In this document: positions 17,744-32,621 of the stretch, in pieces | How the letters are laid out: every line of letters starts with the position of its first letter | Position numbering within the stretch: the first letter of the stretch is position 1 | Source: Paragordius varius | Taxonomy: Eukaryota > Animalia > Nematomorpha | Assembly (NCBI GenBank): GCA_964247055.1 | Contig: OZ176055.1 | Span: 4,030,001-4,094,000, forward strand | Direction of reading: 5' to 3' | Length of the DNA: 64,000 nucleotides | The notes under the pieces: generated by a model | Seen by the model: only the letters and a program-made list of their open reading frames with translations | What the model was told of the DNA's origin: nothing | Database searches by the model: none | Program-made: the position numbers and the translations under genes

Positions 17744-20700
17744 ATGGAAATTTGCCCATTTTATAGTCGAATAGGCGCTTGCAGACATGGTGAAACTTGT
17801 ACAAGGCAACATGATAGGCCTGATTATAGTCGAGTATAATTGTAAATTATTTTTTAGACTATTTTGATTACCAATTTATATATAAATCCCAAGCATGCAA
17901 TCCAATCTCAACGAATAAGTAACAATATTTTTAATTTGAGTCGGAAATTTGCCACAAAATACCACAACTGATGAAGAGGAGCAATCATATTTTGATGACT
18001 TTTTTGAAGAAGTTTTTAAGGAATGTTTTGAAAAGGTAATTTTATTTAATATATTTATTGCATCATTATTCTTGGTAATCTATTATAAAATATGATGCGA
18101 ATTGGTTTTAAAACGATCGCTTAATAGGATTTAAAATTGTTATTGGCTAAATGTTTAAAAATTTAATCGAATTAATTGGTTTTAATTGTTTATTAATGTT
18201 TAACTATAACTTTAATCGGTAAGGCTAATTTAGCAAATACATATTTTGTTTTTTTATTGCTATTTAACCACTAACAATATCTGTTACTTGTTAATGAATT
18301 GTATATAATAATGGTATGAACATTTTTGGAGTTATAGATTGCACATGATGCATCATCTACCTATAAATAAATTACAATTTTACAAAATATATTTAGACTT
18401 TCCGCCAGTAGTTGAATATTTAATATGCAATAATATTTTTAGTCATATATTTAACTATTTCTCCTTCACCCAATGAGTATTGTAAATCGCCTTCAGATTA
18501 AACCATAAATAATTTCAATTAATTTTATATGTTTTTCACACTTTGAAGTAATATTCACCAAAAATATTTTAGGGGGCCAAATAAAATCTTTTTTCTGACT
18601 CAATATCCGTACTTCAAACAGGCAAACATGGCATAAAACATGTGTAGATTTTGATACTTTAAGTAAAAATAAATGAATAGCCAAAGCAAGGGTACGGCTT
18701 TGATTACCCTTGCTTTAGTACATCAATGCTGAATTTTATTTTTGATTATTGAACCCCTTACATATTTTACATAATATTTAATTGAAAACAGGCGTAAACA
18801 TGATGAATTTACTATTTTTCTTAAAGTGTTTATCTATCTTTTAATGGGTTCAATATTGTTATGGTGTTTGAATTATATTTTTTTAATTGATTAGTATGGG
18901 GAGATTGATGAAATGAACGTTTGTGGCAACCTTGGAAAACATTTATATGGAAACGTTTTTATAAAAGTAATTTGATGATCGCATTTTACGCATAACCTTG
19001 AACTGTGACTCATGTTTTTCACATAACAGTTATATGATATACCATTTACAGCTCAAATTCACCCTTAAACAATTCATATTCACCCCTGAACAATTCAAAT
19101 TCACCCTCTAACAATTCAAATTCACCCTTGAACAATTCAAATTCACCCTAAAAATAAATTATGTGTTTTCGAACTAATATAACCCATTATTAATGAGAAA
19201 TATATCTTTATGGCATAGTTTATTATTTTTTCAGTCTTATTTAAATTTAAAACAAAATTTTTATTTTTTAAAAATATATAAAAATAATGGGTAATTTTTA
19301 ATCTAAAAACATATTTTATTTGAGGGTGAATTTGAATTGTTTAAGGGTGAATTTGAATTGTTCAAGGGTGAATTTGAATTGTTCAAGGGTGAATTTGAAT
19401 TGTTTAAGGGTGAATTTGAATTGTAAATGGTATATCTTAATGTTTGATTTTTATATTTATGGATATTTAGAAACAAAAATAAGTTTTTAAATCAAACACG
19501 ATATTTTTATTTTAAATTAAATAAACATTTCTCAAATGCGTTTTTAAAACAATTTAGTTTCAAAGAAGTAAATATGCACAAAAAGCCTACCTTGACCTCA
19601 ATAATCGATGGTTTGGAGGAAGGGCTATGAATGTCGAACTTTCTCCTGTCCTTGATTTTTATGGGGCTTGTTGTCCACAATTTGATCGCGGGTATTTTAT
19701 AAGATGTTTACAGTTTTTTTGATTTTGTACAATTTTGTCGTTTGTAGGCATACAATAAAGAAGGGGCTTTTGATTTGATTTAACATTGGCATAACCTAGA
19801 TTATAATGATATTTTAATGAAGGTGGTCTATATACAAAAATTATATTATCCCTTTAAAAACGGTGTCATACTTTATAAATTTTATTATTCTTCTTCTTAT
19901 TCAAATATAGTTGTTTAGTAAATTAAATACGGATAGCTGCGAATCTTGCTAACGGTAAATTTGAATGTTTTTTAACCTAATAATCTTATATTTTATTTGC
20001 ATGGTATTATGTGTAATATTGAAAATTAAATATTTTTTTATTGGTCTTTAGTCAACAAAGAGTAGGGTCAAAGTTTAATATATCAAATCTTGTTTTTATA
20101 AAATAAGATTTCTGTATTAAGTAAATGCAGGAATTAGTTTTTGTGATTAAATTAAATCCACAGAGCAATGTTTTTTAACTTAGAATGATTATTGATATTA
20201 TATGTTGATTTTTTATTATTTTAGGGATTAATTTAATTATTTCTGCCGATAATAATATTTAAAAATCCTTTTTTATCAAAAGACATAAATGCTTATTGTA
20301 CAAAAATAATCCTCGCTAAAAGGCTATCCAGTATATTTATAATAAATTTTATCATTATTATAAAAATCCAAATCATAACACAATTTTTCTATATAATTTT
20401 AAATCAACACCTAGGCAAACATATTATTCATATTTTATAAATAAGAATAAAACGGTGTAAACAAAAGTCTATTTAATGTGTTCTTTATGAAATAGTAGCG
20501 ATATGCTAGGAGGTATGCATTTATTTCTCAATATTCTACATTATATAATGGGCTTTAATACTTTATATAAAATATTTATTATGTTATCGTCCCTTCTTCT
20601 AATATAGCGAATGTCAACGAGGTGATTTTTGTAATTTTATGCATTTAAAACCCATATCAAAAACGCTCGAAAAACGAATCGAACACTATTTGTCAGAGTA

Positions 20701-26079: not shown

Positions 26080-27822
26080 ATGAGCACAAAAAGAGGTTGT
26101 AAATTCAACGATGAATTAATCAAAGATTTTCCTTTTATCAAAAAAACGAAGAATGAATCATCTGTTAAATGTCTTATATGCGAGGGGGAATTCACCTTAG
26201 CACATGGCGACAAGCATGATATTACAAAGCATATGGAAACATAGAAACATAAAAAATGTTTAGATATGGCGGCATCATCTTACAAAAGGAGCGATTTTTT
26301 TCAAAAAACCGCTTTTGGAGAGGAAGAAAAGAATTTGGCACTAGCTGAGGGCGTGTTATCTTTTCACGCCGTTAATCACAATCATTCCTTTAGATCTATG
26401 GACTGTACCTCACAGGTTATTTGCACGTTATTCCATAAAAAATTTACATGTGCCCGTACAAAGGCTGAAGCCATTGTGTGCAATGTCCTTTCGTCACGAG
26501 CATTTTCTGAAATACAAAAAGATTTGCTAAAAATTAATTTCTTATCCCTATACTCTGATGCATCAAATCACCATGAAACAAAATTATTTCCCACTTTAAT
26601 AAAATATTTTGATTCAGAAACCGGAGTAAAAATTAAAATTTTAGATTTAATTTTTCTACCTTGTGAAAATTCCGAAAGAATATTTACTTTAATAATGCAT
26701 ATTTTAGAAAAAAATAATTTAAAAGACAAAATCGCATATTGCGCTGACAACACCATACCAACTTTGGTGGAAAAGCAATGAGGGGAACAAAAAATATTTT
26801 TTATAAATTAACAGATAATCTTAATCAAAACATTATTGGCGTTGGGTGTGACACGCATATAATACACAACGCTATTAAAACAGCTGCTGATTTGTTACCC
26901 CTAGATGTGGAAAATTCATATTTTTATATATACACGGTACGTGTTGAAACGCTTAAAGAATTTTGTGAAAATGCAGAAGTTCAATATCAAAAATGCTTGG
27001 ATATTGTTAAACTCGTTGGTTAGCTTTTATGCAAGCTATCGAAAGAATTTTAAAAATGTATGATCCTTTAAAATCTTTTTTTTATCACAGGACAATGTCC
27101 TACAACTTTAAAAAAGTTTTTTGAAAGTGATTCTTCAAAAATATGGTAATTCTTACATAATCAAGCTTCTTCCTTTCAAAATGTTATTAAATTTATAGAA
27201 GGTGACAACATTTCGACAATCGAAGTAGCCAATGAAGTTAGTAACCTAAAATTCCAATGTCAAGAACGGTTAGAAAATAATTTTATACCATTAACCATCC
27301 GCAATATAATAAATAATTTAGAAAAAGGCTTAATAAATCGCCAAGATATCCTGTACCTATAAAAATGTTTTATACAAACTGTAAAGATTATTTGGAAGAC
27401 TGGACGACGCAATTCAATGAAATTGATCACTTCATTGGATAACATTAATATCAGAATTTAATTGGTGCGATGTTCAAAAATCATTTGATTATATCTGCTC
27501 CCAAAAATTCTCAATACGTAATCTTTCAGAAAATGATCTTTTTTCTGAAGTATCATTAGTTAAAAGATATATTAATAATGAAAAACTTAAATTATGAACA
27601 AAAGAAAAATATACAGTAGAAAAGAAATGGTTGGAAATATTTCATCATTTTGAAGCCAACTATATTACATACAATAATATTTTAAAAACTGTGGGATTCG
27701 CACTATCTTTACCTGGAACCAACGCTGCTACTGAGCGCGTTTTTTCCACAGTAAATCAGGTGTGGACATCGGAAAAATCAAATCTAAATGTTGAAACTTT
27801 AAAGGCCGTTTTATCTGTCTAA
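26080..27822 (+). pseudogene. hAT transposase pseudogene
   Basis: ATG at 26080; BED-type zinc finger CLICEGEF..HDITKHMET*KH with a nonsense codon; LYSDAS (first catalytic D); CDTH (CxxH); C-terminal dimerisation motif LSLPGTNAATERVFS; several stops and frameshifts. Confidence 0.92.
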
Positions 27823-27949
27823 TATAATTTGACAAACTCCAGTGAAGACTTCTACAATATTTAAAATGATGACAATCTGCTAAAACGCATTCACACAAAA
27901 AATATACCAAAGAATAAAATATTTTCTTATATTTATAAAGTTTTTATGT

Positions 27950-28790
27950 TAAAAAATAAACAAAATTACTTAAAATAGTGTATAATCTTCATAATTTGTC
28001 AAATTATATTTGAACACATAAAATGGCTTTTATTCAACATTTAAATTTGATTCCGTGCCTTACTTAATTTACTGTGAAACGCGTTCAATAGCAGTGGTTT
28101 AGGTAAAGATAATGCAAATTCTACATTAAAATATTGTATGGAACATAATTTGTTTAAAAATGATTATTTTAACCATTTCTATCCTATGTATTTTTTTCTG
28201 TTGTCCATAGTATAAGTTTTCATTCAATATATTTATTTAATAATGAGACTTCATAAAAAAGTGTCATTGTGCACCGTCTTGTCTTCCAAAAAATCGTTTC
28301 TGTTTGTATAAAACATTTTTATATTCTGGCTATTCATTGAGCCTTGTTTTTCTGGATGCTTTATAATATTGCGATTAGGTAATGGTATAAGATTATTTTC
28401 TAACTTTTTTGACTTGGAATTTTGACCTTTGTCCTGTGATAAAAAATATGATTCTAGGAGATCACATTTTTATAAATATTTCAATCGCTGGCAAAAGAGC
28501 TAACCAACAGTTCTACAATATCCAAGCATTTTAACATCCATATTTTCTACATCCAGGGGTATCAAATCAGTAGCTGTTTGAATAGTGTTGTGTATCTGCC
28601 AATAATGTTTTGATTAAGATTATTCGCTAAATTGTAAAAAATATTTTTGTACCGCTTCTTGCATCACCCAGCGCACTTTATGATGATTTCGTTTTTATTA
28701 TTTTTTCTAGAATATTACAATCACTTCACCCTTTGTTCGTGCACATGTAAATTTATTGAATAAGGTACAAACAACCTGAAGGTACAAATT
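27950..28790 (-). pseudogene. Inverted, internally deleted, diverged second copy of the same hAT transposase
   Basis: Reverse-complement matches to 26400-27880, including an exact 26-nt match (26815-26840 vs 28598-28623) and further blocks at ~26991/28515, ~27077/28430 and ~27704/28101. Confidence 0.85.
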
Positions 28791-28795
28791 TTTTT

Positions 28796-29362
28796 ATATA
28801 CCATTTGCACCTTCCTTGAACTTCAAGTTGGTCCTTGAACAATTCAAGTTGGTCCTTGAACATTTCAAGTTGGTCCTTAAACACTTCAAGTTGGTCCTTT
28901 GACTTTTTAGTTTTGTTTTTAATTTTTATCAATCAAATCGTAATTAATTCATCTATTTTATTGTTTTTAACCTATTTTCTATTATTTAATATAAATTTTA
29001 AATCGATATCAAATTTTAATCTTTGAGAAACCGTATATCTTTATTAATTTCTTTAAATAATTTCGTATATTTTTAAGACTTTAACACGAAATGAAAAAAT
29101 ATATAAGTTTTATGGGTTGTTAATTATTTTCATCAAAAACATTTAAAAGTTAATAATTTTATTCAATTGAAAATAGTTTGAAACAAAAAAGTGGTTTTTT
29201 AATAAAATTTTTTATTTTTAAATGAATAAATATATTATAAATGAAGAAAATAGGTTAATAATAAAAAAATAAATGCAAAAATTATGGTTAAATCAAAATT
29301 TATAAATTTTAAGGACCAACTTGAAGTGTTCAAGGACACTCTTGAAGTGCAAATGGTATATT
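28796..29362. mobile_element. Foldback-like MITE family B2, nested in the hAT element
   Basis: TIR TATACCATTTGCAC/GTGCAAATGGTATA; 21-bp unit ttcaagttggtccttgaac(a) repeated in the arms. Confidence 0.82.
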
Positions 29363-29632
29363 TATAATGTATTTGTGTTAAAAATAAATAAATATTAGAA
29401 TAAATTTTTTGTATAAAAATTTTTGGCTGTACCCCCCAATGACCCCCCCCCCTTCTCAGATTTGTCCCGCTTTTTTCCTCAAAAAATCTGGTCACCTTAA
29501 TTATGGAGAAACTTTGGTTCTAATAAGAAATGACCTGATACTTATATTATGGATGAACATGTGGGCAAAATATAAACATGTATGAACATTTATAGAAATA
29601 AATCATTTTTTCTGTCATTACTGTCTAATGTT

Positions 29633-30190
29633 TTAAGCACTTCGATTCGAATTGGGATGTCTAAATACTCTCAGGTAATATTTAGGTTGATAATTATAAA
29701 AAACTACTGAAAGATCCAATTAAAATTTATGCTTCTATCCTAATAAAAATTATATAAATAACCGAATTATTTAAATAAAATTTAATTTTGAAAAAAGGTT
29801 CTATATCCAACTAGTTTGACGCCATTTCTCTTTTGCAACAACTTTGCAAAATATCGTGTTTTTTAAAGCCAAAATTAATATTAATTTTTCATTTAAATCA
29901 CATCTAACATTGATCGACATAAAAACGGGGTTATTTAGCTTAATGCATATTGTCATGTTTACTAAGTTTTTACCTTGCGGTTTTATCATAAAGTAAATAA
30001 TATCAAGTATTTTTATGGAACTTTTTTTTATATATATTGGTTCATTAATGTGATATAAGTGCAAATTTTTGCCATGGTTTAAATTTATTCCATATTTTTT
30101 GAATTATTTAATTTTAAACAGGCCTAGGTTATCCAACTGCCCTAATTGGAATCGAAGGACAGAAAAGAATGTGTTGAATCCAAGTGTTAA
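29633..30190 (+). mobile_element. piggyBac-like MITE family A, diverged copy
   Basis: TTAAgCACTTCGATTCG...CAAGTG-TTAA; collinear with the 33960 copy. Confidence 0.82.
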
Positions 30191-30424
30191 ATTGGAATTT
30201 TAGCGTTAGAAGACAACACACGCTATTCTTCTGAAATGTTGTATAAAATGGCCTCAAAGTAGTTAGATATGGAGTTTAAAAATAAATTTTTGCTTTACCT
30301 TTTTATTATTTATAGAATTTTAAATTGAACTCTTAACTATATTAAATGCAGTCAAGTTACACCAATATAAATCGAATACTTAACAGCTATATTAGTGGGT
30401 GAATAAATTTATAAATCCTCCCTT

Positions 30425-31478
30425 ATGTCATTTTGCTTCAATAAGGGTTAAATTTAATTTATATTTTAGGGAAGGACAAAATAACTTTTTTAGCCAAAGA
30501 AGACTTTGAGAAACTACCAAACTTAGACGAAAGAACACAAAAAGCACTTTTTGAAGATGACGATGAGCCAAAAGGTTTGTTTTTTTGTTATTACCAATCA
30601 CACTGATTTATATAGATGGATGGGTGTATTGCTGCAATCGAGGTCGACTTTTTGCAATATTATATTAAGTTTATAAATTTCTGAACCTAAGTTCAAAGCT
30701 TCTTTAAATCAATCGAAATAAGTCTCTTTTAGTTTTTGCCAATGTTTAATCACTTTTAATTTTTTTTCATTATGGACTGAAGAAATCTTATTCATTTCTA
30801 GTCTTTTTTTGGCATAGTAATGATTCAATTCGTTTAAATTTTTTTATTCTAGGTTTAATTGCAAGCGATGGAAGCATAAATTGGAGCTGTCCATGTTTAG
30901 GAAATATGGCTGTGGGACCATGTGCCCAAGAATTTCGTTCGGCTTTTACCTGTTTTCACGATTCTAATGCCGAACCAAAGGGCTCAGATTGCTTAGAAAA
31001 ATTTTCCTCGATGCAAAATTGCTTTATTAAATATCCAGAACTTTATGGAGACATCGAGGAAAAGGGTGATCAGATTGGCAAAATCGATATGAACGAGGAA
31101 AATACCATTAATACAAAAAGTGAAAATAAAACTAATTCTAAATTGAATAATGAATCTCCACCAAAAAATCCAGAAATAAATAATACCAAATTAACACCTG
31201 AAACCACAAAAATATCCGGTATTTATATCTTTTAAACTGATTTTTGATTACTATTTATTATAACAATTTGAATAATAATTGTTGAGTTGTTTACGTATTA
31301 TATATTTATATTTTTCGATACAAACATATATTTTATTTTAGAAACTGAAAATCCAGAGCCTCTAAATGCCGCAAATATGGAAAACATTCGAAAATTTCAT
31401 CCTAAAACAAAAGAGGATCCCGTTCCACCACATGATTCAATCGATCGTTTTGCACCTAAAATATCGCTGTTTTGGTGA
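30425..31478 (+). CDS. CHCHD4: Mitochondrial intermembrane-space oxidoreductase Mia40, ~209 aa
   Basis: Exons 30425-30446, 30470-30574, 30853-31218, 31342-31478. [20 protein letters not shown] matches the animal N-terminus MSYCRQEGKDRIIF; [17 protein letters not shown] (CPC) and twin CX9C motifs. The last exon is less certain. Confidence 0.93.
30447..30469 (+). other. 23-nt spliceosomal intron
   Basis: GTTAAATTTAATTTATATTTTAG, phase 1; retention gives an immediate TAA after MSFCFNKG. Confidence 0.85.
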
Positions 31479-31703
31479 TTATAAAACAAACTTCACTTTA
31501 AATTTGTACAATTCTAGACAATTATGGTGCATAATATATATATTTTTTTATGACAATTTTATACTTTTATATCATCAATTAGTCAATCAATCATTCACCC
31601 TTATTTTTAATATTGTGATTATTTTATTTCTATCTCAAATGATGATACCTCATTTAATTTGAAACTCATAAAAATTAACTCGTTTATATGTGTATATATA
31701 CAT

Positions 31704-32621
31704 TTATAAATCATGGTTTTTATACAAATTAGAATTTGCATCAAAAAAAATTCCTTTAATTAAATCAATGTGGAGACATAAATAAGGTATGTGGTCGTTT
31801 GTGGTTGGATTTATACCATTTAAATTTGTTTGGAAATCAGATATTTCATAAAAATCAAATGTTTTATCTTTACCACTTCCTCGTTCTTTAGCTAATTCAC
31901 CCGTAGTTATGGATTGGAAATATTTTTGATCTAAATCAGTTTGTTTGACTAGTAAGCTTCCTTTCTTATACATTTGTCGTTCGTTATTGTAATTGCGACG
32001 AAATTGTGAGAAAAGTATTTCATTTTTATCATTAGATAGCGTCCCTTCCAAACGTTTTTGAGCTTGAGACAAAGATAAACCACCATCTTGAACCAAAGCC
32101 CAAAATACGGTATTATACAAATTATTAACATGACAATCTACCTGTCTCCATCTCAAATAATCCCATAAAATACGTGTATTAGGATATGCTATGATACGAC
32201 TATCAAAAACAGGTAAAACTTTCAAAGCTTTAGTTTTAAAGAAATGACCCCAAAAATAGGTATAAGCGGATGTAAAAAGACTGCAGACATGGGAGGCAAG
32301 TTTGCAAGCTCTCCGATTAACATAATCTGTGTCACGCGCAAACACAAAACTATATTCATCGCTTTGACCATAGGCACAAATAATATCGGTAAAGGTTTTC
32401 ATTACGTTGTATGCACAAAAATTCATTAATTCAAGGGCTTTTTCATCGTTAGGTTTTTGGAATTCGTGTAAATCAGTAAATTTATGGAAGCTTTTGCCAT
32501 CAATGCGACACACTATGTAACAAGCAGGGAGAATCGTATCAGATAATTCAAATGATTTTACATAATCGTATTTCTTATTCGCAAATGATAAATTTTTTCC
32601 TATTTTGGCCGTTTGATTCAT
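31704..32621 (-). CDS. THG1L: tRNA(His) guanylyltransferase Thg1, 305 aa, intronless
   Basis: KYDYVKSFE, RIDGKSFHKF (first catalytic D), YGQSDEYSFVF (second D), FDSR, WRQVDCHVNNLYNT, KNEILFSQF. Confidence 0.96.
   Translation of the reverse strand: MNQTAKIGKNLSFANKKYDYVKSFELSDTILPACYIVCRIDGKSFHKFTDLHEFQKPNDEKALELMNFCAYNVMKTFTDIICAYGQSDEYSFVFARDTDYVNRRACKLASHVCSLFTSAYTYFWGHFFKTKALKVLPVFDSRIIAYPNTRILWDYLRWRQVDCHVNNLYNTVFWALVQDGGLSLSQAQKRLEGTLSNDKNEILFSQFRRNYNNERQMYKKGSLLVKQTDLDQKYFQSITTGELAKERGSGKDKTFDFYEISDFQTNLNGINPTTNDHIPYLCLHIDLIKGIFFDANSNLYKNHDL

Follow-up and report, generated by a model that had tools for sequence, protein, structure and literature searches.

The first coding intron of the Mia40/CHCHD4 gene of the hairworm Paragordius varius appears to be only 23 nt long. 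The window analysed here is a 64-kb stretch of the genome, to which all positions refer, and the interval lies at 30447-30469 on the + strand. On the evidence of its sequence and its position, we consider it highly probable that this interval is a genuine U2-type GT-AG spliceosomal intron, reduced in length from the ancestral first intron of bilaterian Mia40. Its removal would join a 22-nt start exon, which encodes the first beta-strand (MSFCFNK) and provides the sole start codon that can be used, to the rest of the coding region. The predicted product is a Mia40 that begins with the metazoan hairpin motif and continues into the CPC and twin-CX9C oxidoreductase core.

Identity and layout of the Mia40 gene

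The identity of the gene was indicated by exon 3 (30853-31218, + strand), which encodes the catalytic core. In this exon, the redox-active CPC motif (INWSCPCLG) lies directly before the CHCH fold, the twin CX9C motifs are present, and the core is followed by an Asn/Lys-rich tail. Exon 3 matched the CHCH family (PF06747) at 1.9e-6, with 28.3 bits against a cut-off of 27.2, and residues 46-117 of human MIA40 (2k3j) were aligned to it at 5.3e-26. Arthropod Mia40 proteins matched it at about 1e-27 in a word search, and their identity in the core reached 74%. When the protein collection was searched in this way for proteins of 67-212 aa, only arthropod-like Mia40s were obtained, and no transcript-derived or annotated product of this species was among them. 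Also, no hairworm was present among the best 120 of 1,849 matches in a Mia40 profile search. By sequence, the gene at 30425-31478 is clearly recognizable as an intact Mia40/CHCHD4 of the metazoan type. This agreed with the preliminary description, which had named the gene as Mia40 and regarded a pseudogene as unlikely; the CPC motif, the twin CX9C motifs, the Pfam CHCH match and the match to human MIA40 were all intact.

The spliced model consists of four exons on the + strand and predicts a protein of 209 aa. Exon 1 (30425-30446; 22 nt) contains the codons for MSFCFNK and the first base of Gly8, and exon 2 (30470-30574; 105 nt), which is in phase 1 at both ends, encodes the second beta-strand and the helix-turn of the AIF-interaction motif. 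Intron 2 (30575-30852; 278 nt) is of the GT..AG type and lies in phase 1 within the Gly codon before L-I-x-x-D-G-S-I-N-W. After exon 3, a putative and lineage-specific intron 3 (31219-31341; 123 nt, GT..AG, 15% GC) precedes a putative exon 4 (31342-31478), which would add a C-terminal extension of 45 codons and a TGA.

If intron 3 is retained, the protein ends 8 codons past exon 3 (...SGI) and has about 170 aa. The putative exon 4 is an open frame of 45 codons in DNA of 26% GC, and its own GC content is 38% against 15% in the preceding intron. It gave no significant match in a local BLAST against the homologues, and intron 3 was unsupported by them, with three coding exons each in the orthologues of Hyalella, Anneissia and Centruroides. 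We have provisionally treated exon 4 as the C-terminal exon. The Asn/Lys-rich tail (31062-31478), with this possible extra exon, is unusually long, as the predicted 209 aa compare with 130-160 aa for Mia40 in other animals.

The start exon and the N-terminal hairpin

The ATG of the gene is located at 30425-30427, and an in-frame stop codon (30404-30406) lies 21 nt upstream. Still further upstream, near 30386, there is a TTAACAG acceptor, which may be a site for a spliced leader. When the frame is read without splicing, it gives MSFCFNKG, a total of 8 codons, and then reaches a TAA at 30449-30451 within the interval, which is in phase 1 and has a GC content of 9%. Removal of the 23 nt gives a junction codon G/GG (Gly) at 30446/30470 and puts exon 2 in frame. 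The preliminary description had reported these coordinates, the length of 23 nt, the junction and the stop after 8 codons, and all of them were reproduced by our reading and translation of the sequence.

Exon 2 has no ATG. Its frame is open upstream only to 30445, where it is closed by a TAA (30442-30444), and the first Met downstream of the exon 2 start comes after the CPC motif. For these reasons, a start exon upstream of exon 2 is required. The pattern M-S-[FY]-C (ATGTCNTWYTGY) had a single match, at 30425, when the 64-kb window was searched on both strands, while 0.29 matches were expected over the 128,000 positions. This match sits 45 nt upstream of exon 2; a GT follows after exactly 22 nt, and the 23-nt interval ends with AG. 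The chance of a match on the right strand no more than 60 nt upstream of exon 2 is roughly 1e-4, before a GT, an AG and the phase are required. Chance is a poor explanation for an MSFC start next to exon 2.

The comparison with homologous proteins gave the same register. In a local BLAST, the exon-2 peptide aligned from residue 9 of every best homologue, and 71 of the 161 homologues fetched began with MS[YF]CxxxGKD. The spliced model has 8 residues before K9, in register with the metazoan motif MS[YF]C...GKDxIIF, and because of these two observations it reproduces both the motif and its exact length. The exon-2 peptide, which is short, gave no match against the PDB sequences. A short soluble N-terminus with the hairpin motif, and not a fungal transmembrane presequence, is obtained only once the 23 nt are removed. 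It had been claimed earlier that an intron is needed to build the N-terminal segment, and this was borne out, as removal of the 23-nt GT-AG interval joins the sole available start codon to exon 2.

It could be supposed that another first exon, located farther upstream, is joined to exon 2 and that the adjacent MSFC mini-ORF is unused. Such an arrangement has some precedent, as the MSYC start has given way to other N-termini in lepidopteran Mia40s, and the sequencing runs that contain the locus are DNA only. We nevertheless regard it as very improbable. No second MS[FY]C match exists in the 128 kb, and this one is separated from exon 2 by exactly one GT-AG interval, with phase and register both correct; the position of the micro-intron is the ancestral one, as described below. 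In addition, the 4 kb upstream consist of high-copy repeat DNA, with a depth of about 1e6 in comparison with less than 1e3 over the gene.

The function of this N-terminal segment has been studied in human CHCHD4, in which a beta-hairpin made of the first 20 residues pairs with AIF (PMC11832770). In the human protein, I12, I13, F14 and V15 make the hydrophobic contact with AIF, and H20 anchors the turn that follows (PMC11832770). In the Paragordius model, I12 and F14 are kept and L15 stands in place of V15, while I13 is changed to Thr and H20 to Phe. The start codon and the first strand come from exon 1; the contact strand (I12, T13, F14, L15) and F20 come from exon 2. The preliminary description had called the product of the short first exon and its junction the AIF-binding segment. 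The role of the human N-terminus is published (PMC11832770), and the intron is indeed needed to build the segment. Most of the contact residues are on exon 2 and not on exon 1. By analogy with the human protein, the N-terminus may bind AIF in Paragordius as well; the H20F change calls for caution on this point.

Position and sequence variation of the 23-nt interval

Three annotated Mia40 orthologues were mapped onto their own genomic DNA, namely those of Hyalella azteca (an amphipod), Anneissia japonica (a crinoid, a deuterostome) and Centruroides vittatus (a scorpion). In Hyalella, the first coding exon has 22 nt and is followed by a phase-1 intron of 141 nt before G8-K9-D10. The first coding exon of Anneissia also has 22 nt, with a phase-1 intron of 1,132 nt, and that of Centruroides has 22 nt when counted from the Met of MSYC, with a phase-1 intron of 7,528 nt. 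The second intron of Anneissia and Centruroides is at the same site as in Paragordius, in phase 1 within the Gly codon before L-I-x-x-D-G-x-I-N-W, and that of Hyalella lies one codon upstream of it. A comparison of exon 1 length across metazoan CHCHD4 genes had been suggested earlier, and its outcome, 22 nt and a phase-1 intron in all three species, was in favour of the intron. The preliminary description gave 22 nt for the first coding exon of human CHCHD4 as well, which agrees with these three animals.

Judged by phase and alignment, the 23-nt interval is at the ancestral bilaterian intron site. Neither a random insertion nor a chance ORF accounts for this position. The exon structure behind the AIF-interaction hairpin would then be shared by arthropods, the Paragordius genome and a deuterostome, the crinoid Anneissia. 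Compared with metazoan CHCHD4/MIA40 (2K3J; PMC11832770), the Paragordius gene shares the CPC and twin CX9C motifs, the MSxC...GKDxIxF hairpin of identical length, the 22-nt first coding exon and the common positions of introns 1 and 2. It differs in the replacement of H20 by Phe and of I13 by Thr, in the long Asn/Lys-rich tail, and in the length of intron 1, which is 23 nt compared with 141 to 7,528 nt in the three orthologues.

Public sequencing runs were aligned over 26200-32000. Five of them contain the locus, and all five are DNA and carry the unspliced form; five runs with the same species label, labelled as possibly RNA, contained next to none of the words of the locus. A contig of the first run (X1, record 2) covers 30254-30484 and shows 0 differences across the micro-intron. 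A contig of the second run (X2, record 10) shows 30452 A>T; it covers 30254-30490 with 0 gaps, and the length of 23 nt is kept in it. A more divergent contig (X3) carries 30452 A>T together with 30467 T>C, and the latter change gives TTTCAG. Both haplotype variants leave the GT and the AG intact.

It might be asked whether an error of assembly or sequencing has created the 23 nt; nothing was found that favours this. The site is covered by contigs from four runs, two samples and two studies, one of these contigs with 0 differences, and variants are seen in the other haplotypes. We give this reading hardly any probability, and the independent DNA runs refute it in practice.

Among the differences listed, two fall in the 23-nt interval and one in the 127 nt of exons 1 and 2 (30494 C>A, Ala to Asp). 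The direction of this difference is the one expected of an intron, although the numbers are too small for significance. Over the whole span, the exons hold 3 of the 20 differences listed and make up 37% of the length.

These data bear on the reading of the gene as a pseudogene, or as a gene with a decaying 5' end, in which the 23 nt would be a frame-breaking insertion. It is true that the unspliced frame is broken after 8 codons, that the H20 anchor is replaced and that the tail is unusually long. Against this, all of the catalytic motifs and the frames of exons 2 and 3 are intact, and the exons hold a smaller part of the differences listed than of the length. A random insertion would not be expected to have a GT, an AG and the exact ancestral phase-1 site, and introns of this kind are also indispensable in other conserved genes of the window. 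Decay of the gene is very unlikely in our opinion.

Some other features of the runs were also observed. By its summed contig depth, the region 26200-30270 (about 4 kb, adjoining Mia40 on its upstream side) consists of high-copy repeats, and many alternative joints were found in it (e.g., 27925>29357 and 28778>29357), which suggest nested or polymorphic transposon copies. Run X5, labelled "organism B", gave short contigs over 30534-31779 with a depth of 2-11, and its records 29 and 30 were identical to the locus. Carry-over, an infected-host sample or mislabelling fits these contigs better than a related species does.

Probable splicing of very short introns in Paragordius, and very short introns in other animals

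The 5' site of the micro-intron, AAG/GTTAAA, is weak, with T at +3 and A at +5, and resembles those of the longer introns of the gene (GTTTGT and GTATTT). The 3' end is T-rich, with the acceptor TTTTAG/G. A possible branch site, TTAAT (YURAY-like), lies about 10 nt from the 5' end and 12 nt from the 3' end, and such a motif has little discriminating power at 9% GC. In an intron of 23 nt, the distance of about 10 nt from the 5' site to any branch point is less than the need assumed for standard metazoan spliceosomes. We presume that the intron would be recognized by intron definition, through the weak AT-rich 5' site, the central TTAAT-like branch site and the nematode-like TTTTAG acceptor.

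Spliceosomal introns shorter than 30 nt are known in ciliates, nucleomorphs, microsporidia, Dicyema and myxobolids. The introns of Paramecium have about 25 nt and those of Stentor 15-16 nt, and tiny introns are also found in the Bigelowiella nucleomorph. The introns of the ciliates and of the Bigelowiella nucleomorph resemble the Paragordius interval in size, AT-richness and GT-AG ends, and in that retention can be detected, either through a stop codon in frame or because the length is not divisible by 3. They differ in that those organisms are unicellular and nearly all of their introns are tiny, while the micro-intron of Paragordius occurs among much longer animal introns.

The resemblance in size extends to the internal eliminated sequences (IES) of Paramecium, and spliceosomal excision is itself deduced here. 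Excision at the DNA level, as in ciliate IES, or an endonuclease/ligase pathway like that of XBP1 could be imagined on this ground. Against it stand the canonical GT-AG ends, the run rich in T before the AG and the orthology of the site to spliceosomal introns of other animals, and no joined form 30446/30470 was present among the DNA contigs listed. The probability of a non-spliceosomal route is very low, even lower in our judgement than that of the alternative first exon or of the pseudogene.

Ultra-short spliceosomal introns have been described in the myxobolid Myxozoa and in Dicyema japonicum (PMC13644364, in which Lu et al. 2019 are cited). In a 2026 survey, the myxobolid Myxozoa and Dicyema are the only animals named with introns of less than 30 nt (PMC13644364). 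The spliceosomes of both handle introns of 22-27 nt with canonical components (PMC13644364), and because these animals splice such introns, splicing of 23 nt is feasible in animals. The Paragordius interval is similar to those of the myxobolid Myxozoa and Dicyema japonicum (PMC13644364) in its GT-AG ends, its length within 22-27 nt, its weak splice-site motifs and its occurrence in a parasitic animal lineage. It would presumably share with them canonical U2-dependent splicing, which is deduced here from DNA. It is different in that it belongs to an ecdysozoan lineage, which is not named among the carriers (PMC13644364), and in that it stands beside introns of 278 and 123 nt in one gene of a repeat-rich genome.

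A U2AF1-like gene was found in the same window at 17744-18035 on the + strand. Its first exon encodes a CCCH zinc finger (Pfam 9.4e-8). Next come two GT-AG intervals, of 24 nt (17834-17857) and 22 nt (17919-17940), with an exon of 61 nt between them. The conserved protein is in frame only when both the 24-nt and the 22-nt intervals are removed.

By this criterion of reading frame, introns of less than 30 nt are predicted to recur in more than one gene of the genome, with 23 nt in Mia40 and 24 and 22 nt in the U2AF1-like gene. A window-wide scan of ORF continuity, in which GT..AG intervals that bridge ORFs were collected by a criterion too loose for the outcome to weigh against short introns, gave no length peak at 22-24 nt. 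We think it likely, with somewhat less confidence than for the Mia40 intron itself, that this lineage has shrunk ancestral introns to a discrete class of 21-30 nt, which occurs beside introns hundreds to thousands of bases long in a genome rich in repeats.

The gene next to Mia40 encodes THG1 (tRNA-His guanylyltransferase; 31704-32621, - strand). It is a single exon of 305 aa, transcribed towards Mia40, and about 225 nt separate the stop codons of the two genes. In BLAST, its best match was Gordionus sp. m RMFG-2023, with 46% identity over 94% of the query. A "Muted" (BLOC1S5-like) domain is included in the RefSeq model of Gordionus THG1 (L005:10001-27014, isoform X1, 478 aa), which extends over 17 kb, overlaps with a gene for an M18 peptidase on the opposite strand and looks like a merged gene model. 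By this synteny route to the orthologue of the nearest annotated relative, no Mia40 was found in the Gordionus THG1 locus and its 10-kb flanks. The GC content of this Gordionus locus is 26.4%, and that around the Paragordius locus is about 26%. A Mia40 gene without introns was observed on an 11-kb contig of GCA_025491035.1 (L004:1026-1466), which is unlike the three-exon structure in the other animals checked.

In the searchable literature nothing was found on intron sizes in Nematomorpha, and the hairworm genome papers in it are silent on introns. If our reading is true, Paragordius would represent a third independent origin of introns of less than 30 nt in animals, and the first in Ecdysozoa. 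A 23-nt intron at the ancestral position of an essential gene would be a clean natural test of the spliceosomal intron minimum in a bilaterian.

The finding would also have consequences for genome annotation in this group. Gene predictors and spliced aligners may overlook a start exon of 22 nt when an intron of 23 nt comes next, and genes like Mia40 might then be called truncated or missing. If true in general, gene finders and aligners with minimum-intron settings could lose start exons, and this might inflate the gene losses reported in the group. The Gordionus genome has a BUSCO score of 71.6% and a GC content of 26.9%. We suggest that the loss of micro-introns in annotation may bear on the claims of massive gene loss and on the low BUSCO scores of hairworms.
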